A stretch of 64,000 nucleotides of DNA, from the IMG/VR virus record IMGVR_UViG_3300036781_000418, positions 1 through 64,000 of that record, one strand, 5' to 3'. Of the stretch, positions 9,111 to 47,901 are shown in pieces (position 1 is the stretch's first letter; each line of letters begins with the position of its first letter). The notes beneath the pieces are model-generated. The model saw only the letters and a program-made list of their open reading frames with translations. It was not told where the DNA came from and searched no databases. Both the position numbers and the translations under genes were made by a program.

Positions 9111-10268
9111 ATGTTCCCAGAGATCAAGACGTTCGCCGACCTGAAGCCAAAGCTGAACGAGAAGTTCAACATCCATGAGCGCGACAAGGGCTACGCCACC
9201 GTGGTCTACGGCATCCAAGACGACGAGGTGTTCGACGGTCCTGACGAGGCCTACCTGCGTGAGTGCCGTGGCATCATGTTCGACGGTGAGCGCGACGACT
9301 CCAAGCTGATCTGCCGTCCACTCCACAAGTTCTTCAACGTGGGCGAGCGCTCCGACACCCTGCCGTCGGCGATCGACTGGTCGCGTGTCAACAAGGTTGG
9401 CGTCAAGCGTGACGGCTCCATGATCACGCCGTTCATCGACCCGGCAACGTACGAACTGCGCTGCAAGACGAAGAAGTCCTCGGCGACGAAGGAGGCGGCG
9501 GCCGCCCTCAACCTGCTGCTCAACAACCAGCGCCAACACCAGTGGGTGGTGAACCTTATCGAGGTCGGCTACACGCCGATCTTCGAAATCACGTCCCCGC
9601 GCTTTCCAATCGTCGTGTTGTACGAACAGGAGGAGCTCACGCTGCTTCAAGTCCGCCACATGGAGCAGGGCGTCTATCTGACCGACGCAGAGATCGCCGC
9701 TCTCAACCCACCGTTCCCAGTCGTGCCCGACGTTGCAAGCCAGTTCCTTGACAGGGACGGTCACGTGAGCTGGCCGCTGATCCACAAGGCCTGCCAGGAA
9801 ACGCATGGCATGGAGGGCTGGATCATCCAGACGTCACGTGACATGTACAAGGCGAAGACGCAGTGGTACATGGACCTGCACCACTCGGTGACGTTCATCC
9901 GCTGGCGTGACGTCGCACGCTGCGTGCTGTCCAACAGTGCCGACGACCTGAAGGCGAACTTCCGGATGACGGGTCGGGACGTTGTTCCGATCGAGCTGGT
10001 TCAGGCCTACTTGAAGGAGGAGCTCGAGTACGTTCAAGGCAAGGTCAACTTCGAGGTCCAGTTCGCTCGTGACGCGGGTCTGTCCTTCAAGGACATGGCG
10101 GGTTCCCTGCGATCCCACCCGTACTTCAACCTGATTATGGCCACATCCCGCGGCCAAAACGTTGACTACAATGAATGGTACCAACGGCGTCGTCTCAGCG
10201 ACTGGTCCCTTGAAGTGATCACAACTGAGGTGAAGTTTATCGAACCCCTAGCACGCGAACGTCCATGA
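9111..10268 (+). CDS. rnlA: RNA ligase 1 (T4 RnlA-like)
   Basis: RECRGIMFD, CRPLHKFFN, motif I KRDGS, FE, EGW, KxKTQWY. Confidence 0.9.
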   Translation: MFPEIKTFADLKPKLNEKFNIHERDKGYATVVYGIQDDEVFDGPDEAYLRECRGIMFDGERDDSKLICRPLHKFFNVGERSDTLPSAIDWSRVNKVGVKRDGSMITPFIDPATYELRCKTKKSSATKEAAAALNLLLNNQRQHQWVVNLIEVGYTPIFEITSPRFPIVVLYEQEELTLLQVRHMEQGVYLTDAEIAALNPPFPVVPDVASQFLDRDGHVSWPLIHKACQETHGMEGWIIQTSRDMYKAKTQWYMDLHHSVTFIRWRDVARCVLSNSADDLKANFRMTGRDVVPIELVQAYLKEELEYVQGKVNFEVQFARDAGLSFKDMAGSLRSHPYFNLIMATSRGQNVDYNEWYQRRRLSDWSLEVITTEVKFIEPLARERP

Positions 10269-36816: not shown

Positions 36817-37449
36817 ATGCGGCGCATCCTACTTGCGTTGACGGTCGTTCTGTCCTCGTCAGCTTTCCTAATCAACTACGCCTTCTCGGAGATGCCTCAG
36901 GCCAAGGGCACGGTCGTCATCGGCGAGAAGCCCACCTACATCAAAGGCAACCAAGCGGTCACCCTCCTGCCGACCGACCTCAACATGAGCCAGGCCCAGC
37001 TCCTCAGCAAGGCCTATGAGATCGCGAAGGCCGACGGCCACAAGGATCCAGAGCTCGTGCAGGGCATTATCCTTCAGGAGTCTGAGGCGGGTCGGGCCAC
37101 GGCCTACCGCGTTGCAGGCTCGAAGTCGGAGCCGTACTACGGCGTCGGTCAAGTGAAGCTGGACGCGACGCGTGACGTCATGTCGGCCTACCCAGCCATG
37201 TGGACGAAGTACCGCTTCCAAACGAAGACGGACGATGAGCTCAAGGCCTACTTGATCTTGAACAACGTCTTCAACATGGAGGTGACGTCCAAGTACCTCC
37301 GCATCTTGGAAGTTCGCTACGGCCTCTCTGGTCGCGACCTGCTGAACGCCTACCAGAAGGGGCCAGGTGGCTACAAGGAAGTTGACCCTGATGAGTACCA
37401 CTACGCCCGTGGGGTTGAGGACAAGCTGGCAAGGATGAAGCGTCGATGA
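36817..37449 (+). CDS. lytic transglycosylase (SLT-like) with N-terminal signal/anchor
   Basis: QES catalytic motif, GVGQV, AYQKG, Y..V; hydrophobic N-terminus. Confidence 0.8.
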   Translation: MRRILLALTVVLSSSAFLINYAFSEMPQAKGTVVIGEKPTYIKGNQAVTLLPTDLNMSQAQLLSKAYEIAKADGHKDPELVQGIILQESEAGRATAYRVAGSKSEPYYGVGQVKLDATRDVMSAYPAMWTKYRFQTKTDDELKAYLILNNVFNMEVTSKYLRILEVRYGLSGRDLLNAYQKGPGGYKEVDPDEYHYARGVEDKLARMKRR

Positions 37450-37988
37450 TGAAGAATATCGTGCTACCGCAGATCAAACGCGTCGTGCCATCCACCGTGG
37501 TGATGACGAACGTTGGTGTGCAACCAATGTCGGCACCAAGTGGGATACTACCAATGCTTAGGTACAATTTCACTCCCAACGTTGTCACTGTTGACATTGC
37601 GCGACCAACTATCATGTTGATCACGCATGACCAGTATATGGAGTTAAGATGTAAGAATAGCGTCGTTGACACTTGCGTAGCTCGCTCATGGCCAGTTGAC
37701 GCAATTATGGCATGGCTCCAGTCAAACATCGATCCAGAAGGCTCAATCATCATCCATGTCAATCAGCTTAGCTTGATTGTCTCATCTGGTATTTGGTCTG
37801 GTATACTAAAAGGGCGGGCTTACTTGTATAGCCTAGGGCAAGATAAAGGATTGTCCTTTCACTTTAACGGCATGATCGCTTTGGTTGGGTTAGATGAACT
37901 TACGCCTGTTAAACAGCGGGCCGCATTCTCGCGACTTCGGTTGATCGCGCCCAAGACGCAAATCATCCCCGGCAAGTACAAGCTCTAA
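37446..37988 (+). CDS. hypothetical protein with N-terminal major-capsid (Gol-like) segment
   Basis: IKRVVP..VGVQPMSAPSG..LR matches the T4 gp23 RRAIP..GVQPMNSPTG..LR segment; remainder unrelated and more AT-rich. Confidence 0.65.
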   Translation: MMKNIVLPQIKRVVPSTVVMTNVGVQPMSAPSGILPMLRYNFTPNVVTVDIARPTIMLITHDQYMELRCKNSVVDTCVARSWPVDAIMAWLQSNIDPEGSIIIHVNQLSLIVSSGIWSGILKGRAYLYSLGQDKGLSFHFNGMIALVGLDELTPVKQRAAFSRLRLIAPKTQIIPGKYKL

Positions 37989-41008: not shown

Positions 41009-41719
41009 TCAAGAGTTCGGGAACGGACCCGTTGCTGGGGTGAACGTGCCAGTGTAGCGAGCCACACCCTTGGTGACACGCACTTCGTCGATGTAGCCAG
41101 GGAAGAAGTGGGCGTCGGTAGAGCCACCAACCCGTGCTACTTGTGACGTCATGTTGATCGAGTTCGTCGCCGTACCAGCCGACACACCGTTGATCCACAC
41201 CGTCAGAGTCGTGCCAGAACGTGTCACGGCGACGTGTGACCAGGTGTTCACCACCACGGCCACAGTTGACGTCAGGTAGTTGGCCAAGTGGTTACCCAAG
41301 ACCACACGACCAGAACCGTTCACGTAGGCGTTGCAACCGTCTTGAGCTGAGGCGCTGGCCGAGCAGATGAACGTACCGACCGTCACGAAGGACGTTGGGA
41401 AGATCCAGCATTCCTGCGTGAAGTCACCAGTGCCGAAGGCGTAGGCCGCGATAGTCGGAAAGTCAAGATAGTCTGTTGAGCCGTTGAACTTGCCCGACGT
41501 TGCACCGTACTTGAACTGAGTCGTTGACGTGACTGGAGTACCCGTCCGAGTCGGCGTGGCTCCCTTCTGGTCGGTGAACACGGTGCCGTTGTTGGCACCT
41601 TCCATGTGCATGAGCAGCGAGACGTTGGCGAAGAACGGATCAACGGAGAGCGCGACTCCACGCTGGGCCCCGAAGGACCGAGCCGAAGCCGCGCCGAAAG
41701 TTGACATAAGAGGCATCAT
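41009..41719 (-). CDS. LamG/concanavalin A-like receptor-binding protein
   Basis: DPFF.NVSLL.H.EG, FGTGDFT.ECW, W.HVAV.R, GYIDEVR.TKGVARY. Confidence 0.85.
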   Translation of the reverse strand: MMPLMSTFGAASARSFGAQRGVALSVDPFFANVSLLMHMEGANNGTVFTDQKGATPTRTGTPVTSTTQFKYGATSGKFNGSTDYLDFPTIAAYAFGTGDFTQECWIFPTSFVTVGTFICSASASAQDGCNAYVNGSGRVVLGNHLANYLTSTVAVVVNTWSHVAVTRSGTTLTVWINGVSAGTATNSINMTSQVARVGGSTDAHFFPGYIDEVRVTKGVARYTGTFTPATGPFPNS

Positions 41720-41725
41720 GGATCC

Positions 41726-43783
41726 TTACTTGTACTGGGTTTGCGATGCGAGCACCGTGTAGGTGGCCGACGCGGTCTTGATAATCGTGAACGAATACGA
41801 GTCGATACCGCTTGCGTTACCAGCACTTGGCGCGACACCACCAATCCACTTTGGCGTCACGGCGGAACCGTCCACTTGGTAGGCTGAAGCGTAGAACGGC
41901 GAAGCACCGTTGGTGATCAACATAGCGACCGAGACTGACTCACCGACTGCGAGGGCCGTGTTCATCGACGTACCGCTGGACCATGCAAAGTTGACCGTGA
42001 AGTTGGCCGTTGCGTTGGACGTGTAGTACTGGACGGCACCTGACGCGGCGTAGAATGTCTGTGTCGTGGACGGTGCCGATCCAACGACCGACACGACTTC
42101 CGTAGCGTTGGTCAAGTGGGCGGCCGGAGCGGAGGTTGTACCAGCCAGCGTGGTGGAACCAAGGGTAGCCGTGCTGGTTGTCGTCAGCGTGCTGAAGCGA
42201 CCAGTCGAAGCCGTGGTAGCGCCGATTGGCGTGTTGTCGATCGACGTAGCGGATACGGCACCGGTGAGGGTGATGGTCGTGCCAGTCAAGGCGATCGTCG
42301 TACCAGCCAGCGTGATGGTCGTCGCTGTGTTACCAGTGCGAGCCACCGTGAGCCAGTCGGCGTTCGAGGAGATCGCGTCGTTCTGGAGCGTGAAGTGGAT
42401 CGTACCACCAGAGCCAACGTAGATTTCCGAGGTCTTCAGGTCAGTGCCAACGGCACTGTTGATGAGACGGACGATTGGGAAGGAGTTGGTGTCAATACCC
42501 GCGTAGGTACCCGTAGTTCCAGCGCTTGAGACCAAGCTCGTGCCGTTCAGCGACGTGACGGACAGGCTCTGCCAAGTAGCTGAGGTGCCGTCCGTGATCA
42601 GGGCCTTGGTGGCGTTGGTGGCTTGCGATGGGAGGATCGCGGTCAGGGCGGCGGCCGCGGAAGTCGCGCCAGTACCACCGTTGGCGAGGGCCAACGTGCC
42701 AGCCAGCGTGATCGTGCCGGAGGTCGTGATTGGAGAACCCGTAACCGTCAGACCAGTCGTACCACCGGAGAAGGCGACCGAAGTCACGCCACCACCAGCG
42801 GAGGAGACCTGCGAGAACGTCAGGCTGGTCGTGCCGACGGTGATCGCGCCAGAGGTGATGAGCACCCAGCCAGTTCCACCGTTCAAGGTACCAGATTGGA
42901 CGTACACGAAGTCACCGGATGAGACTTCGTTCGATGGGTTGCCGTCGAAGTCGGCGGCTCGTGCCCAAGCGCCAGCAGCCGAAACGTAAACGCCGTTCTG
43001 CGAGCCAGTCGATTGGTTCTTGACCAGCACGCGTGAGCCGCTGGTGAGAACACCGTCGATGGTTTGTTCACCTGACAGGGTCAGGTTGGCGGTCGATGCA
43101 ACGTTGACGGACGGCTTTGGGGTGAGACCAGCGGCGACCGCGTCAACGTACTGCTTGGTGGCGACTTGAAGGTTGCCAGTTGGGTCAGCGGAGACCGAGA
43201 CAGTACCAGCCAACGCAATGGCCGTGCCAGTCAGGGTAATAGTGGTAGCCGTCGTGCCGGTACGAGCGACCGAGAGCCAGTCGACGTTGGACGAGATGGC
43301 GTCGTCTTGCAGAGTCCAGTGAATCGTGCCGTTGTTACCGACGTAGACTTCAGACGTCTTAGCGTTTGAGCCGGCTGACGAGTTCAGGAACCGCGTGATT
43401 GGGAAACTGTTTGAGTCCAAACCAACGTAAACACCAGTCGTGCCTGAGCTGGAGACCAGCGCGGTGGCCGAGAGGCTAGTTGGGGTGCCAGCCACTGTGG
43501 ACCAGACACCGTCACCACGCCAATAGGTAGAGCTGGACGCGTTGGTGCCGCTGTTCAGGTGGGACACGTCCAAGTTGCCGGTGGCCGTTGAAAGGTCGAC
43601 TGAGCCACTACCACCAGACTGTGACCAGGTGGATCCGTTGTAGGAGTAGAGACCTTCAGGCGCTGCGTCGGTGCGGTAGAACAGTTCGCCGACGGATGGA
43701 TTCGATGGGAAAGCCGTACCGTTCGCCACGGTAAGGTTGGTTACGACAGACCCTTCGAGGAGGGTTAGACCGTCTGAATGCAT
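41726..43783 (-). CDS. tail fibre protein
   Basis: ATKQYVD, RVLVKNQ..NGVY domain; ~90-aa internal duplication; TAAATA at 43811-43816 on minus. Confidence 0.85.
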   Translation of the reverse strand: MHSDGLTLLEGSVVTNLTVANGTAFPSNPSVGELFYRTDAAPEGLYSYNGSTWSQSGGSGSVDLSTATGNLDVSHLNSGTNASSSTYWRGDGVWSTVAGTPTSLSATALVSSSGTTGVYVGLDSNSFPITRFLNSSAGSNAKTSEVYVGNNGTIHWTLQDDAISSNVDWLSVARTGTTATTITLTGTAIALAGTVSVSADPTGNLQVATKQYVDAVAAGLTPKPSVNVASTANLTLSGEQTIDGVLTSGSRVLVKNQSTGSQNGVYVSAAGAWARAADFDGNPSNEVSSGDFVYVQSGTLNGGTGWVLITSGAITVGTTSLTFSQVSSAGGGVTSVAFSGGTTGLTVTGSPITTSGTITLAGTLALANGGTGATSAAAALTAILPSQATNATKALITDGTSATWQSLSVTSLNGTSLVSSAGTTGTYAGIDTNSFPIVRLINSAVGTDLKTSEIYVGSGGTIHFTLQNDAISSNADWLTVARTGNTATTITLAGTTIALTGTTITLTGAVSATSIDNTPIGATTASTGRFSTLTTTSTATLGSTTLAGTTSAPAAHLTNATEVVSVVGSAPSTTQTFYAASGAVQYYTSNATANFTVNFAWSSGTSMNTALAVGESVSVAMLITNGASPFYASAYQVDGSAVTPKWIGGVAPSAGNASGIDSYSFTIIKTASATYTVLASQTQYK

Positions 43784-44142: not shown

Positions 44143-44169
44143 GTCATCGACGCTTAGGCGGTCGACATA

Positions 44170-44195
44170 AATAGGACACTTGCGTGTCCTATTTT
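44170..44195 (+). terminator. terminator, followed by late promoter at 44198-44203
   Basis: AATAGGACAC-TTGC-GTGTCCTATTTT. Confidence 0.7.
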
Positions 44196-44207
44196 GGTAA
44201 ATAGCGA

Positions 44208-46487
44208 ATGACTATCCTCCGCCGCCTTAACGAAGGCATCGATCACGTCGACGATCTCCCAGTCGACCAGTTCATCCAGATCATCTCGACCCTGAAGGAC
44301 ATGCGTCTTTCGGAGAAGCTGGACGGCTCAAACCTGTGGGCGGGCGTCGACGATCAAGGGAAGGTGTTCATCTCCCGTGAGGGTAAGCGGAACAACGCCA
44401 AGCGGATGTACGCGCCAGAAGACTGGGCGAAGGTCGGCAACAACAACCAGTTCATCGCCGCCACGGCCGCCATCATCAACCAGCAAGCTATCTTTACCCA
44501 GTGCCTGAAGCCTGGTCAAATGGTCGAGCTTGAAGTCCTGTACGGCAACCAACCGAACACCGTCGTCTACAACAACGCGTTCAACTTGATCGCCGTGTTG
44601 CGTGGCGTCGAGGACACACCGTTGGGCGTCGCCACCTCGCTGGCCGCGGCCCTGAAGGACAAGACGGCCGACGTTAGCGTCAACCTCGTCTCCAGCGACG
44701 ACGGTGAAAACCTGAAGATGGTCCTGACGGACGCGAAGTTCCAGTTCATCACCCCGAAGACGTTCGACGCCAAGAAGCTCGAGCACGGTAAGCTGAACGC
44801 CGAGGTCAAGAAGTTGCAGGACTTTGCCGCCAAGAAGTCCACCATTGCTGGGTACACGAACGCCGAGCTCGCCGCGGTCAACCTCAACAAGGTCCCGAAG
44901 GAAGAGCGCGACGCCGCCAAGTCGGCCCGTCAAGAGCTGCTTGACACCTTCCAGTCCGACTTCATCCAGCCAATCAAGGCCCTCCTGCTCGACACCTTCA
45001 TCGGTGGTAGCCGTGACGGCGCCGAAGGTGTCGTCATCTCCAACCCCAACGATGGCTCCCAGTTGAAGCTGGTGGACAAGGAGAAGTTCACCCAGCGTAA
45101 CGTGGAAGTCCAGCAGGAACGTGCGAACCTGCAAGGCGCCGTGATGACGACCGACCAGAACGCTGACCTAGCAGCCCGTGGCGGCCTGATGGGTGAGCTG
45201 AAGATTATGTTGGCCGAGCTGCTGGGCAACCGCAACATGGCCCGCGGCGCCGAGTTGAACAAGGTGCTGGCCTCGTTGAAGGCACAAGACGTCCCAGCCG
45301 CCGTCCAGAAGCTGGCGGACCAGCTCCAAGTCGACGACTACCTAGCGATCCGCAACAAGGCGATTGCCTTGACGTCCGCCACACAGGACAAAGTCGCGGC
45401 CGCCCTGAAGGAGTTCAAGGGTCAAGTCCAGGCTGACACGACTGGCAAGAAGCTTGGTCAGGACAACGTCAAGCGGACGTTGGTCACCTACGCTGAAGTC
45501 AACAACCGCCTGAAGTCGTTGGTCGCCAAGCTCAAGGGTGCGGAGGACATGCGTGGCATGGTCAACGCGATCTACGGCCCAGCGATCACCACGTACTTCG
45601 AGAAGCGGATTGAAGCACAGCAGGCGAACGAGGCGCTCACCGAGAACAAGGGTGAGCAGGACATGATCAACCTCAAGAACCTGACACCGTTCATCGTGAT
45701 CAACTGCTACCTTGCCACCCTGTTCATGACGATCATCTGCATCAAGGAACAGGACAAGCTGGCGATGCGCAAGATCGCGGACCGTTCGAACTTCAGGCTC
45801 AAGGACTTCTCCCACAACATGTCGCCGCTGAACTTCTGGGGCTACATCTTCTGGCGGGCCTCGAAGGCGGACGTCAAGAAGACGCTCGGCAAGGAGACCT
45901 CGGCGAAGCTGCACACGATCACGAAGAACATCCCAGTGATCTGGTGGCGGACCATGCACCAACAGCTGGCCCAACACAGCCAGCTGAAGTTGGACGTTCC
46001 AACCACCCAGCGAATGTTCAAGCTGATCCTTGAATACTCGGGAATGAGGACCGCCCGTGTAAATAGACTGATCAATGGGGTGCTGAGCTGGGATGATCAG
46101 GACTTCGATCAGAAGGTTGAGCTGCTCAACGACATGTACCTGTACGGTCAACAGTTCCTCCCAACCTCATACCTCTACAAGCGTGTTCGAATCATCCAGT
46201 CGAACATGCTGCTCAATGCAAACGGAGTAAACGACATGGTGGTCACCGAAGGACGGCTGTTGAAGCGCCTGATTGGACTGACTGAAGACGGTGAAGGCGA
46301 CGGCATGGCTGGGGCCGAACCCTCTGGTCAGCCAGCCGGCATGACGGCGACGACGGACATCGCGCCGCTCGCGATGCCACTCGGCACGACCGTCCACGTG
46401 GTCAAACGCAAGCGCAACCCTAACATCAAGCGCCTCAAGTTCAAGTACAAGGATCCAACCCAGAATGAAACTCCTAAAAACGATTAA
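44208..46487 (+). CDS. putative virion protein with an RNA-ligase-like nucleotidyltransferase domain
   Basis: EKLDGSN (motif I), SR, ELE, EGVVI (IV), LKLVDK..F (V); LNE/LTE sites; late promoter. Confidence 0.65.
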   Translation: MTILRRLNEGIDHVDDLPVDQFIQIISTLKDMRLSEKLDGSNLWAGVDDQGKVFISREGKRNNAKRMYAPEDWAKVGNNNQFIAATAAIINQQAIFTQCLKPGQMVELEVLYGNQPNTVVYNNAFNLIAVLRGVEDTPLGVATSLAAALKDKTADVSVNLVSSDDGENLKMVLTDAKFQFITPKTFDAKKLEHGKLNAEVKKLQDFAAKKSTIAGYTNAELAAVNLNKVPKEERDAAKSARQELLDTFQSDFIQPIKALLLDTFIGGSRDGAEGVVISNPNDGSQLKLVDKEKFTQRNVEVQQERANLQGAVMTTDQNADLAARGGLMGELKIMLAELLGNRNMARGAELNKVLASLKAQDVPAAVQKLADQLQVDDYLAIRNKAIALTSATQDKVAAALKEFKGQVQADTTGKKLGQDNVKRTLVTYAEVNNRLKSLVAKLKGAEDMRGMVNAIYGPAITTYFEKRIEAQQANEALTENKGEQDMINLKNLTPFIVINCYLATLFMTIICIKEQDKLAMRKIADRSNFRLKDFSHNMSPLNFWGYIFWRASKADVKKTLGKETSAKLHTITKNIPVIWWRTMHQQLAQHSQLKLDVPTTQRMFKLILEYSGMRTARVNRLINGVLSWDDQDFDQKVELLNDMYLYGQQFLPTSYLYKRVRIIQSNMLLNANGVNDMVVTEGRLLKRLIGLTEDGEGDGMAGAEPSGQPAGMTATTDIAPLAMPLGTTVHVVKRKRNPNIKRLKFKYKDPTQNETPKND

Positions 46488-47901
46488 CGAGTTTGTAGGC
46501 GACGCTCAGTCCAACCTGAAGACTAGCGACGGTAACGACGCCGGGCAGACCGACGTCAAGAGCTACAACGTCTCGTTCAACATGCTCCGCAACACCATCA
46601 ACCAAGGTGACGGTGAGAACGTCCAAGCTTCAGACGTGAACAACTACCTTGAGCGTGCCCATGAGATCAACAACGAAGTTGACACCGTGGAGTATGGTCT
46701 CGAGACGGACGACGGCCGCATCATCAAGATTTGGGTGAACGCGGCGGACGCCACGGCCTTCCAAGACGAGATGCAGCACCTGCTCGGCGTGGAGAATGAC
46801 ATTGAGGAGGCGATCAACACGCTGGCCTCGAAGTTCGACATCGTCGACGTGGTCTGGCCAGACGCCAACCAAGCGACCGCCGACGTGCCGGACGCTGAAG
46901 CAACCGACGACCTTGGAGTCACGGACGACCTAGACGCCGTCGGCGACGACGACCGAGACGGTGCGACCCTGGCTAAGGCCGCCCTTGATAAGATCAACGG
47001 CAAGTCCAGTGACGACAAAGACGATGACGACGAACCAACCAACGAAACAAAGGCCCCAATGAGCATCGGTAGCGACTTCTTCAAACGCGTCATGCAGGAG
47101 GCCGATGAGGCTGACGTTGACGGCATCAACGACGGCTTGAACATCAAGCTCGACCCACGTCAACGTTCGATCATGCTGCGCCTACGTCGTGCGATCGACC
47201 GCAAGATCCTCGCCTTGTTCGCCATGATTGGTGTTCCAGGCCGCTACATGGACGTCGAGGGTATCGACGGCCTGATCAAGGAAGCGGGCCTGAAGCTGCG
47301 TGCCTCACCAACCCAGCAGGCCGCGTTCAACTCCTTCTACACGGCCTTGGGCAACGCCCGCGGCTTTGGAACTGCGCCTGACGCCGAGACGGTCGCCGAA
47401 GCCGGTGAAGAGAACCTGAAGGGTGCCTACATCCAGAAGATGCTTGAGGGCATCGCGGTCCACCTTGGTCTGCCAGAGTCGCTCGTCGTCTCGGGCGGTC
47501 CACAGCAAGTCTCCCTCGCCTTCTACAACTGCGCCAAGCTGATTGAAGACGACGGCGCGTTGGAAGCCGCGATGCGCAAGTTGGCCCAACGGTTGAAGGT
47601 CTCCTCGTCCGCTGAAAAGCCGGCCGAGAAGGTCGCTGAAGACGTGAACACCGGTGGTGACCCGTTCCTGGCGGCCGTGGTTACGTTGGTGGAGGCCCTT
47701 GGTATCCCAGAAGCCAACCTCAACTACCAGCGCTCGAACGTGCTCAACAGCCTGCGCGCCCTTAAGCTCAGCTTGAACAACCGCTCGATGATCCAGCAAC
47801 GGATGGCGGCCCTCAGCACGCTGATCGCGGCCAACGTCAAGCAAACCGCTGGACAGCCAGCGGATACGACCGACACCGCTGGAACTGCTGGCACCGCCTA
47901 A
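46465..47901 (+). CDS. putative internal head protein
   Basis: MKLLKTINE leader; acidic linkers with TNE, MQE and VAE sites. Confidence 0.65.
   Translation: MKLLKTINEFVGDAQSNLKTSDGNDAGQTDVKSYNVSFNMLRNTINQGDGENVQASDVNNYLERAHEINNEVDTVEYGLETDDGRIIKIWVNAADATAFQDEMQHLLGVENDIEEAINTLASKFDIVDVVWPDANQATADVPDAEATDDLGVTDDLDAVGDDDRDGATLAKAALDKINGKSSDDKDDDDEPTNETKAPMSIGSDFFKRVMQEADEADVDGINDGLNIKLDPRQRSIMLRLRRAIDRKILALFAMIGVPGRYMDVEGIDGLIKEAGLKLRASPTQQAAFNSFYTALGNARGFGTAPDAETVAEAGEENLKGAYIQKMLEGIAVHLGLPESLVVSGGPQQVSLAFYNCAKLIEDDGALEAAMRKLAQRLKVSSSAEKPAEKVAEDVNTGGDPFLAAVVTLVEALGIPEANLNYQRSNVLNSLRALKLSLNNRSMIQQRMAALSTLIAANVKQTAGQPADTTDTAGTAGTA

Follow-up and report, generated by a model that had tools for sequence, protein, structure and literature searches.

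Does the uncultivated jumbo phage represented by IMG/VR record IMGVR_UViG_3300036781_000418 carry a ligase-like enzyme inside its capsid? The question arises from an open reading frame in the window analysed here (64,000 nt, positions 1 to 64,000 of that record), which a preliminary description, made from sequence alone, had taken to encode a probable virion-packaged RNA-ligase-like enzyme with ordered nucleotidyltransferase motifs, a long helical region, a second domain bounded by LTE sites, an RLNE leader and a late promoter. The open reading frame and the sequence features ascribed to it are real. It spans 44208..46487 (+), starts with ATG and encodes 759 aa (84.5 kDa, pI 9.1); an in-frame TAG two codons upstream makes this the first possible start, whereas position 44198, given previously as the start, is that of a TAAATA hexamer. 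The locus is composed of the following features.

44169..44194 (+), terminator-like hairpin after the upstream small gene, with an 11-bp perfect stem (AAAUAGGACAC / GUGUCCUAUUU) and a UUGC loop
44198..44203 (+), TAAATA promoter-like (T4-late-like) hexamer, 4 nt before the ATG
44208..46487 (+), the open reading frame, stop codon included
44208..44234 (+), N-terminal leader MTILRRLNE (residues 1-9), a putative capsid-targeting propeptide with predicted cleavage after E9
44235..45107 (+), predicted ligase-type nucleotidyltransferase domain (residues 10-300)
45108..45620 (+), helical domain (residues 301-471), completing a conserved N-module of ~480 aa that many relatives encode on its own
45621..45650 (+), linker (residues 472-481) with the second L-T-E site (residues 477-479, ALTENK)
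45654..46217 (+), basic, all-helical C-terminal domain (residues 483-670) without assigned fold or function
46278..46286 (+), third L-T-E site (residues 691-693, GLTEDG)
46287..46484 (+), disordered C-terminal tail (residues 694-759)
46465..47901 (+), downstream partner gene (478 aa, acidic), overlapping the open reading frame by 23 nt

Is the N-terminal part a ligase-type domain? All five motifs named in the preliminary description are present and colinear: SEKLDGSN (I, residues 35-42, with the K37 codon at 44316-44318), SR (Ia, 56-57), ELE (III, 107-109), AEGVVI (IV, 272-277) and LKLVDKEKF (V, 286-294). A family-specific GxQPN...Y signature lies at residues 113-121, and an insertion of roughly 140 aa (126-265) separates motifs III and IV. 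A word-seeded search returned 43 homologs, and an exhaustive profile search returned 597 clusters at 50% identity. In an alignment of 28 full-length homologs of 33-76% identity, E36, K37, D39, G40, S56, R57, E109, E273, G274, K287, D290 and K291 are invariant, and K37, D39, G40, R57, E109, E273, G274 and K287 are also invariant in 52 N-modules of 20-40% identity, an alignment from which two rows from annotated GenBank loci were left out. Across 143 N-modules, the motif I lysine is found in 140 of 141 aligned sequences, the other motif residues are conserved in 138-142 of 143, and K291 is K or R in 135 of 143; the motifs are thus not chance look-alikes. The predicted structure of the N-module (pLDDT 93.5, pTM 0.90) shows a nucleotidyltransferase domain fold. 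In fold searches, RNA ligases consistently outranked capping enzymes, which appeared among the weaker matches, although Foldseek E-values against the PDB were weak (0.02-0.2). A 498-aa relative (E 1.5e-24) is labelled “RNA ligase domain-containing protein” in AFDB.

Sequence-based family assignment was less successful. The window protein itself did not reach the threshold of any Pfam ligase model, and it had no hit to the RNA_ligase model PF09414 at E up to 1; 21 of the 28 homologs matched this model below its gathering score of 27 bits (best score 25.7 bits), and one distant relative, P0146, reached 29.1 bits. The protein did not match PF09511 (RNA_lig_T4_1), and hhalign comparison of the family profile with the genome's own Rnl1 and with its two PF09414 ligases as single sequences was not significant, albeit the short alignments fell on motif I and motif IV. 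A Pfam DUF3348 hit (19 bits) was set aside because it is sub-threshold and lies in the helical region. Searches of the protein and of both family profiles against PDB sequences gave only coiled-coil noise (SKA1, AUGMIN, ApoA-I), and PHROGs contained no family for this protein or for ten relatives. The family of about 600 clusters is unannotated and has no characterised member and no literature.

The preliminary description regarded the protein as a second ligase beside a conventional Rnl1 encoded at 9111. The Rnl1 gene is confirmed at 9111..10268 (PF09511, E 2e-21), but the genome additionally encodes two canonical PF09414 RNA ligases and an ATP-dependent DNA ligase (PF01068, genome coordinate C1:172280, a model that does not match the present open reading frame), which makes the present gene the fifth ligase-like gene rather than the second. 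The possibility that it codes for the replicative DNA ligase was rejected, because a canonical ATP-dependent DNA ligase is present and because no OB-fold domain with motif VI follows motif V, the residues after motif V being all helical in both models.

Does the protein bear signals for packaging into the head? Three L-x-E sites, ending at E9 (RLNE, residues 6-9), E479 and E693, fall in low-confidence or disordered stretches of the models (residues 1-9, 472-481 and 671-737), and an [LIVMF]-x-E is kept at each place in the homologs. The leader is disordered in both models; 91 of 126 family leaders of 3 aa or more end in [LIVMF]-x-E directly before a conserved G-I-x-H-I-E-D-L, and one subgroup starts with Met exactly at the post-cleavage position, with no upstream in-frame start. 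In the linker (pLDDT 42), all 28 homologs keep [LIVMF]-x-E followed by basic residues and a variable-length insert. At the third site, [LI]-x-E is kept in 27 of 28 homologs, and E693 is invariant. The genome encodes a T4 gp21-type prohead protease (PF03420, 88.9 bits, C1:129812-130219); gp21 cuts after L/I-x-E, and T4 Alt is trimmed at both ends (PMC9026906). Family leaders resemble the capsid-targeting leader MKTYQEFIAE of T4 IPII/IPIII. In this genome, N-terminal [LI]xE leaders are three times more frequent than the motif at control positions, are associated with the TAAATA motif (Fisher 4.5e-7), and are carried by the protease, scaffold-like, capsid and adjacent genes, pointing to a very large set of capsid-targeted proteins in this phage; however, L-x-E is a short motif which also occurs at the N-terminus of its tail-fibre-like proteins.

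Published virion data for two homologs differ. ORF438 of Ralstonia phage RsoM2USA is one of the ten most abundant SDS-PAGE/LC-MS bands of purified virions (PMC8504454), whereas the homolog of Pseudomonas phage PA5oct is not among the 93 virion proteins found by mass spectrometry, although many of its neighbours are. The RsoM2USA band is listed at 51.69 kDa, compared to 62.4 kDa predicted for the ORF and 54.4 kDa for the piece between its L-x-E sites; since it is not known how the 51.69 kDa figure was derived, this is only an indirect hint of processing.

The C-terminal domain (pLDDT 85-94) carries a conserved MSPLN-WGY motif plus D516, D525, H584 and N619. It occurs as stand-alone proteins of ~217 aa (AFDB A0A0F9NFE1, TM 0.69, rmsd 3.0; and P0153), but is absent from the RsoM2USA and PA5oct homologs, and it had no match in Pfam or the PDB and nothing usable in the ESM Atlas (TM 0.35 or less). 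The tail (pLDDT below 50) consists of an acidic/Gly stretch followed by a basic ATT..IA..P..G...KRKRNP..K.L..KF.DP motif, which is conserved in the full-length family and also present at the end of RsoM2USA ORF438.

How is the gene organized and possibly transcribed? TAAATA occurs 26 times in the window against 2.8 expected and lies upstream of 62 of 441 crude ORFs, including the prohead protease and tail-fibre-like genes. Its usual distance to a start codon in this genome is 21-32 nt, with a mode of 24-25 nt, so that the 4-nt spacing is atypical and the previously proposed late promoter uncertain, although the ortholog at locus L003 has a spacing of 5 nt. A downstream alternative start at the usual spacing was considered, but there is no in-frame start codon there. 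A second TAAATA copy (44168-44173) overlaps the 5' arm of the hairpin, which folds with -23.9 kcal/mol (z -3.7 against shuffles). The same hairpin-then-promoter layout sits upstream of the orthologs at loci L003, L004 and L006 and in RsoM2USA and PA5oct; promoter function is inferred. The partner gene has no promoter motif of its own nearby, and its N-terminus, MKLLKTINE, also ends in I-N-E. Homologous partners follow the ligase-like gene in L003, L004, L006 and RsoM2USA (ORF437), share a block of ~80 aa, and all have an N-terminal L-x-E; searches, including the ESM Atlas, yielded no family or fold assignment for the partner protein encoded here. The order primase, DnaB-type helicase, small genes, this gene, partner, PD-(D/E)XK nuclease is conserved in very divergent phages; the conserved neighbours are thus replication genes and not head genes.

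Taken together, we consider it more likely than not, with moderate confidence, that the gene encodes a capsid-targeted member of the polynucleotide-ligase (covalent nucleotidyltransferase) superfamily, closest in predicted fold to ATP-dependent RNA ligases. In this view, the gene would be transcribed late from a TAAATA-type promoter together with the partner gene, and the 84.5-kDa precursor would be recruited into the prohead core through its leader and possibly its basic tail. Cleavage by the gp21-type protease after E9, E479 and E693 would release a ~51-kDa catalytic N-module and a ~25-kDa basic helical C-domain, which would stay in the DNA-filled head, as T4 Alt and the internal proteins do, and would be expected to leave with the DNA on infection. 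The N-module would then use K37 to form an enzyme-AMP intermediate and seal or 5'-adenylylate broken nucleic acid before any phage gene is expressed; the target could be host or phage RNA, or nicks or ends of the incoming genome. The motifs, their conservation, the predicted fold, the position and conservation of the cleavage-type sites, and the protease gene are established by the present analysis, and the abundance of a homolog in virions is taken from the literature, while cleavage, ejection, ATP use, the covalent intermediate, strand joining and the substrate are inferred only. The interpretation of the preliminary description is therefore supported in part: a ligase-type domain and, by inference, packaging are supported, but the proposed injection and the repair of RNA or DNA breaks or modification of host targets before phage gene expression, for example against anticodon nucleases, remain hypotheses. 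A role in RNA repair against anticodon nucleases would, moreover, need an end-healing (kinase/phosphatase) module, and none is attached.

Two alternative readings appear unlikely, to about the same degree. The protein might be a cytoplasmic replication or repair enzyme that is not deliberately packaged, i.e., an extra nick-sealing ligase working with the neighbouring primase, helicase and nuclease, for example on Okazaki-fragment or recombination intermediates, with the RsoM2USA virion signal being adventitious. The conserved neighbourhood, the intact active-site motifs and the absence of the PA5oct homolog from the detected virion proteins are in line with this view. However, the genome already has an ATP-dependent DNA ligase with its own Pfam-level match, no OB domain or motif VI is present, the RsoM2USA homolog is a Coomassie-visible band of purified particles and not a trace, and the conserved leader and linker L-x-E sites and T4-like leaders would have no explanation. 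Alternatively, it might be mainly a structural or DNA-organising internal head (core) protein built on an exapted ligase fold, with secondary or vestigial catalysis. This is suggested by the high abundance of the homolog in RsoM2USA virions, by the basic C-domain and tail (pI 9.7 and 9.2), and by about a dozen distant relatives which have lost the motif I Lys and motifs Ia, III, IV and V, yet persist as proteins of 690-930 aa, so that the scaffold has some role that does not need catalysis. Nevertheless, the conservation of the catalytic Lys in this protein and in 140 of 141 aligned N-modules that keep the GxQPN signature, and of the other motif residues, indicates purifying selection on the active site. 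Least likely is a packaged nucleotidyl transferase that does not ligate but caps or adenylylates the 5' ends of the incoming genome (end protection) or AMPylates a host target, since, although ligases, capping enzymes and end-adenylylating enzymes share the same fold and motifs and the nick-clamping domains of ligases (OB, or the Rnl2 C-domain) are not recognisable here, RNA ligases outrank capping enzymes in fold searches, the motif I context K-L-D-G-S-N is of the RNA-ligase type, and there is no evidence for any protein target.

Known phage RNA and DNA ligases are made after infection and work in the cytoplasm, and the known packaged and ejected enzymes are of other kinds (ADP-ribosyltransferase, RNA polymerases, nuclease inhibitors). 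A ligase-type enzyme delivered with the DNA would add nucleic-acid repair or end modification to the things a phage can do before its first gene is read, when it is most exposed to host nucleases. The strongest form of this idea, which is doubtful on present evidence, is that a catalytically active polynucleotide ligase is pre-loaded in many copies and ejected with the genome, reseals RNA or DNA cut by host defence nucleases or adenylylates genome ends before phage transcription, and would be the first packaged nucleic-acid repair or end-modifying enzyme; the family would be widespread among T4-like and jumbo phages, and some lineages would since have turned the protein into a purely structural head component. 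Since at least one member is in a culturable phage, RsoM2USA, where the protein is already visible on a gel, the idea is directly testable, and the family offers natural versions predicted to be active and inactive for comparison.

Among known systems, Pfam DUF6267 and cyanophage “cytidyltransferase-like domain” proteins are only a weak lead to possible relatives of the present protein. Profile matches of 10.2 and 15.6 bits cover the motif IV-V region (profile positions 319-375 of 376), far below the gathering score of 27 bits; DUF6267 clusters are the nearest named neighbours in the ESM Atlas feature search (score 0.62, a lead only), Foldseek matches cyanophage proteins at E about 1e-4, and a second word-seeded search with the N-module profile added no DUF6267-annotated relatives. 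The cyanophage and DUF6267 proteins often carry an extra HIGH-type nucleotidyltransferase domain that is absent here.

From the ATP-dependent RNA ligases (T4 Rnl1, Naegleria/Deinococcus Rnl5-type, T4 Rnl2/REL1, and the fungal Trl1 ligase domain), the protein differs by the lack of a significant sequence match to PF09414 or PF09511, the ~140-aa insertion between motifs III and IV, the GxQPN..Y signature, the K-x-x-x-K spacing of the two motif V lysines, the propeptide-like termini, the extra C-terminal modules and the inferred presence in virions; its activity is predicted only. RsoM2USA ORF438 and PA5oct EST35_0228, both annotated as hypothetical proteins, are homologs of the N-module (30% identity over residues 7-482 and 27% over 8-345, respectively; Foldseek E 5e-21 to the PA5oct protein). 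Both lack the 483-670 domain, but the RsoM2USA protein keeps the leader, an L-L-E site and the basic tail. T4 Alt and the internal proteins IPI-IPIII are capsid-targeted, gp21-processed, ejected head proteins. The present protein has no sequence or fold relationship to them, its predicted catalytic domain is a ligase-type nucleotidyltransferase and not an ADP-ribosyltransferase, and its cleavage and ejection are inferred; it resembles them in its short leader ending in L/I-x-E and in the gp21-type protease encoded by the same genome, and it resembles Alt in having a second cleavage-type site near the C-terminus (PMC9026906) and in being, by prediction, an enzyme rather than a building block.

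The gene for the ligase-like protein is an uninterrupted open reading frame of 759 amino acids, with an in-frame stop two codons upstream of its ATG. The window is the first 64 kb of a 342,591-bp virus record with direct terminal repeats and a G+C content of 57.8% (G000:C1, the whole genome), whose nearest cultured relatives are the jumbo phages Ralstonia RsoM2USA and the Pseudomonas PA5oct group. The window features considered here are as follows.

9111-10268, the Rnl1 gene
37446..37988, a small ORF with a weak partial match (37449-37571) to the Gp23 major-capsid profile
41009-43783 (- strand), a tail-fibre-like gene and a Laminin_G_3 lectin-fold gene
44169-44194, a terminator-like hairpin with an 11-bp stem
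44198-44210, a TAAATA promoter-like element and the start of the ligase-like gene
44208..46487 (+), the ligase-like gene
46465..47901, an acidic partner gene of 478 amino acids

The observation made in the preliminary description holds, since every sequence string it had named is present and in the order it gave: SEKLDGSN (residues 35-42), SR (56-57), ELE (107-109), AEGVVI (272-277) and LKLVDKEKF (286-294), together with RLNE at residues 6-9 and LTE at residues 477-479 and 691-693. A word-seeded search found 43 relatives, and an exhaustive profile search found 597 clusters at 50% identity, 273 of them at E below 1e-30. In 28 full-length homologs (33-76% identity), E36, K37, D39, G40, S56, R57, E109, E273, G274, K287, D290 and K291 are invariant. 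In 52 diverse N-modules (20-40% identity), the invariant set comprises K37, D39, G40, G46, R57, E109, N117, Y121, E273, G274, K287, F294 and R305, and across 143 aligned N-modules K37 is K in 140 of 141. The residues a ligase needs are therefore exactly the ones under the strongest constraint.

The full-length AlphaFold model built on the 28-sequence alignment has a pLDDT of 78, while the model of the N-module (residues 1-482, 52 sequences) has a pLDDT of 93.5 and a pTM of 0.90. Foldseek searches against the PDB listed almost only polynucleotide ligases at the top, albeit with weak E-values of 0.02-0.2. The Pfam RNA_ligase model (PF09414) does not hit the window protein; it hits 21 of the 28 homologs below threshold (best 25.7 against 27 bits) and one distant relative, P0146, above it (29.1 bits). 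The AlphaFold DB cluster representative of the 498-aa form carries the automatic name "RNA ligase domain-containing protein" (E 1.5e-24). After motif V the predicted chain is helical, and there is no OB domain or motif VI. An insertion of about 140 residues (126-265) separates motifs III and IV, which probably explains the poor sequence and Foldseek scores. Cyanophage "cytidyltransferase-like domain" proteins of 590-970 aa, among them the BFVD hit A0A0M6VVW4 (S-PM2), share the ligase-like fold at a Foldseek E of about 1e-4, suggesting fusions of this module with a HIGH-type nucleotidyltransferase, possibly the DUF6267 lineage.

The conserved core of the family is formed by the first ~480 residues, made of the nucleotidyltransferase domain plus a helical domain. 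Many relatives consist of just this core (450-520 aa), and others carry unrelated C-terminal extensions up to 1460 aa. In the window protein the core is followed by a linker, an all-helical basic domain (483-670, pLDDT 85-94) and a disordered tail. The C-domain exists elsewhere as a free-standing protein of about 217 aa, but searches returned no recognisable fold relative. The tail, with its KRKRNP-type basic motif, is conserved even in RsoM2USA_438, which lacks the C-domain. The distant family members P0058, P0063, P0106, P0110, P0121, P0123, P0124, P0128, P0130, P0139, P0154 and P0177 (690-930 aa) have lost the motif I lysine and most other catalytic motifs while keeping the fold-level similarity, and are natural inactive versions.

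The three L-x-E sites fall in the only disordered stretches of the models (1-9, 472-481 and 671-737), and an [LIVMF]-x-E is kept at each place in the homologs. The genome encodes a T4 gp21-type prohead protease (PF03420, 88.9 bits) next to scaffold-like and Gp23-type capsid genes; weak matches to only the N-terminal (propeptide) part of the Gp23 major-capsid profile were also obtained in unrelated small ORFs (window 37449-37571 in ORF 37446..37988, and C1:230129-230227). In T4, gp21 cuts after L/I-x-E, virion proteins lose N-terminal propeptides of 7-65 residues, the 10-19-residue leaders of the internal proteins are capsid-targeting sequences (CTS), and the packaged enzyme Alt is trimmed at both ends (PMC9026906). 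Across the family, 91 of 126 leaders of at least 3 residues end in [LIVMF]-x-E immediately before the conserved G-I-x-H-I-E-D-L, and many resemble the IPII/IPIII leader MKTYQEFIAE of the T4 record, examples being MKTFKQFIFQKTPIAE, MKSSFKEFL... and MLTFKQYAQPILTE. The annotated start of RsoM2USA_438 (L001:5947-5970, in the RsoM2USA locus) is probably seven codons too early, as starting at Met8 gives the CTS-like MLTFKQYAQPILTE and the usual distance from TAAATA, here 27 nt. One subgroup begins with Met exactly where the others would be cut, with no possible upstream start. In this genome, an [LI]xE within residues 3-12 occurs in 86 of 441 crude ORFs, about three times the rate in control windows further in (6-7%), and is strongly associated with an upstream TAAATA (28 of 62 against 58 of 379; Fisher 4.5e-7). 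This very large set of ORFs with "MKLxxLxE"-type leaders (for example C1:75611-76685, 133888-136277 and 272364-273347, and at window 8215, 11060, 19276, 46465 and 48693) suggests dozens of capsid-targeted, protease-processed proteins.

Experimental support comes from RsoM2USA, for which purified particles were separated by SDS-PAGE, the most abundant bands were cut out, and ORF438 was identified by LC-MS/MS as one of ten (PMC8504454). The supplementary table of that study gives ORF438 the coordinates of RsoM2USA_438, the homolog found here. The protein is listed at 51.69 kDa, whereas the ORF predicts 62.4 kDa and the segment between its leader and tail L-x-E sites 54.4 kDa; this is suggestive of trimming, although we cannot tell how the listed figure was obtained. 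In contrast, the more distant PA5oct homolog EST35_0228 is not among the 93 proteins detected in PA5oct virions, although many neighbouring genes are represented.

In the window and in three unrelated metagenomic phage contigs, the gene order is primase-like, DnaB-type helicase, small genes, the ligase-like gene, an overlapping partner gene, and a PD-(D/E)XK nuclease. In the window, the tail-fibre-like gene (685 aa, with an internal duplication and PHROG tail fiber/virion hits) and the Laminin_G_3 lectin-fold gene on the other strand are inserted between the helicase and the ligase-like gene, interrupting the synteny seen in related contigs. The partner overlaps the ligase-like gene by 23 nt and is homologous in four of the five other loci compared, being conserved as a pair through a block of about 80 aa in L003, L004 and L006 (loci with related genes) and RsoM2USA (ORF437), while the PA5oct neighbour showed no similarity. 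Each copy starts with its own L-x-E leader; searches assigned no fold or family to the partner. The preliminary description had counted the gene as a second ligase besides Rnl1; however, the genome also holds two canonical PF09414 RNA ligases and an ATP-dependent DNA ligase (C1:262401-263459, 176836-178173 and 171605-173152), but no NAD-dependent ligase, so that this is a fifth ligase-like gene.

TAAATA occurs 26 times in the window against 2.8 expected, mostly as cTAAATA upstream of start codons, including those of the prohead protease and tail-fibre-like genes. The late promoter proposed in the preliminary description, of a T4-like type, is a fair inference. However, the usual distance to the ATG is 21-32 nt, whereas here it is 4 nt, which would imply a leaderless or nearly leaderless mRNA. 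The L003 ortholog has 5 nt (L003:7989-8003), and L006 has TATAATA 5 nt from its ATG (L006:7993-8004). Promoter-like elements only 3-8 nt from the ATG, with no Shine-Dalgarno sequence, are found in five genes of this genome and in orthologs, pointing to possible leaderless mRNAs. A second TAAATA copy, 34 nt upstream, sits in the 5' arm of the terminator-like hairpin at 44169-44194, and either copy might be the active one. Hairpins of this layout also lie upstream of C1:118133 and C1:252917, so that the end of one transcription unit and the start of the next overlap.

Taken together, the best reading is a capsid-targeted, protease-processed, ligase-type adenylyltransferase. The motifs and their conservation, the predicted fold, the placement of the L-x-E sites and the presence of the protease gene emerge directly from the analysis, and occurrence in virions rests on the published homolog, whereas packaging and processing of the window protein and its catalytic activity are inferred, and any substrate or timing of its action is conjectural. 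The interpretation in the preliminary description, a virion-packaged ligase acting before phage gene expression, is partly supported, and the suggested role against anticodon nucleases in particular would need an end-healing activity that is not visible here. A cytoplasmic replication or repair ligase, which we consider unlikely, would be favoured by the synteny and by the non-detection of the homolog in PA5oct virions, but the existing DNA ligase, the missing OB domain and the virion band count against it. Similarly unlikely is a mainly structural core protein on an exapted fold, as favoured by the abundance in virions and the dozen relatives lacking catalytic motifs, since the motifs are nearly universally conserved elsewhere. 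A non-ligating end-capping or AMPylating enzyme appears the least likely alternative.

Literature searches retrieved no paper describing a packaged ligase-like protein or this family, and all database names are "hypothetical", apart from occasional automatic labels such as "RNA ligase domain-containing protein" and one likely misannotation as a transcriptional regulator. The protein is best regarded as a ligase-superfamily enzyme that differs by its putative capsid-targeting propeptides and new accessory modules; in this view it would be carried in the head like T4 Alt, but with a predicted nucleic-acid-joining active site.
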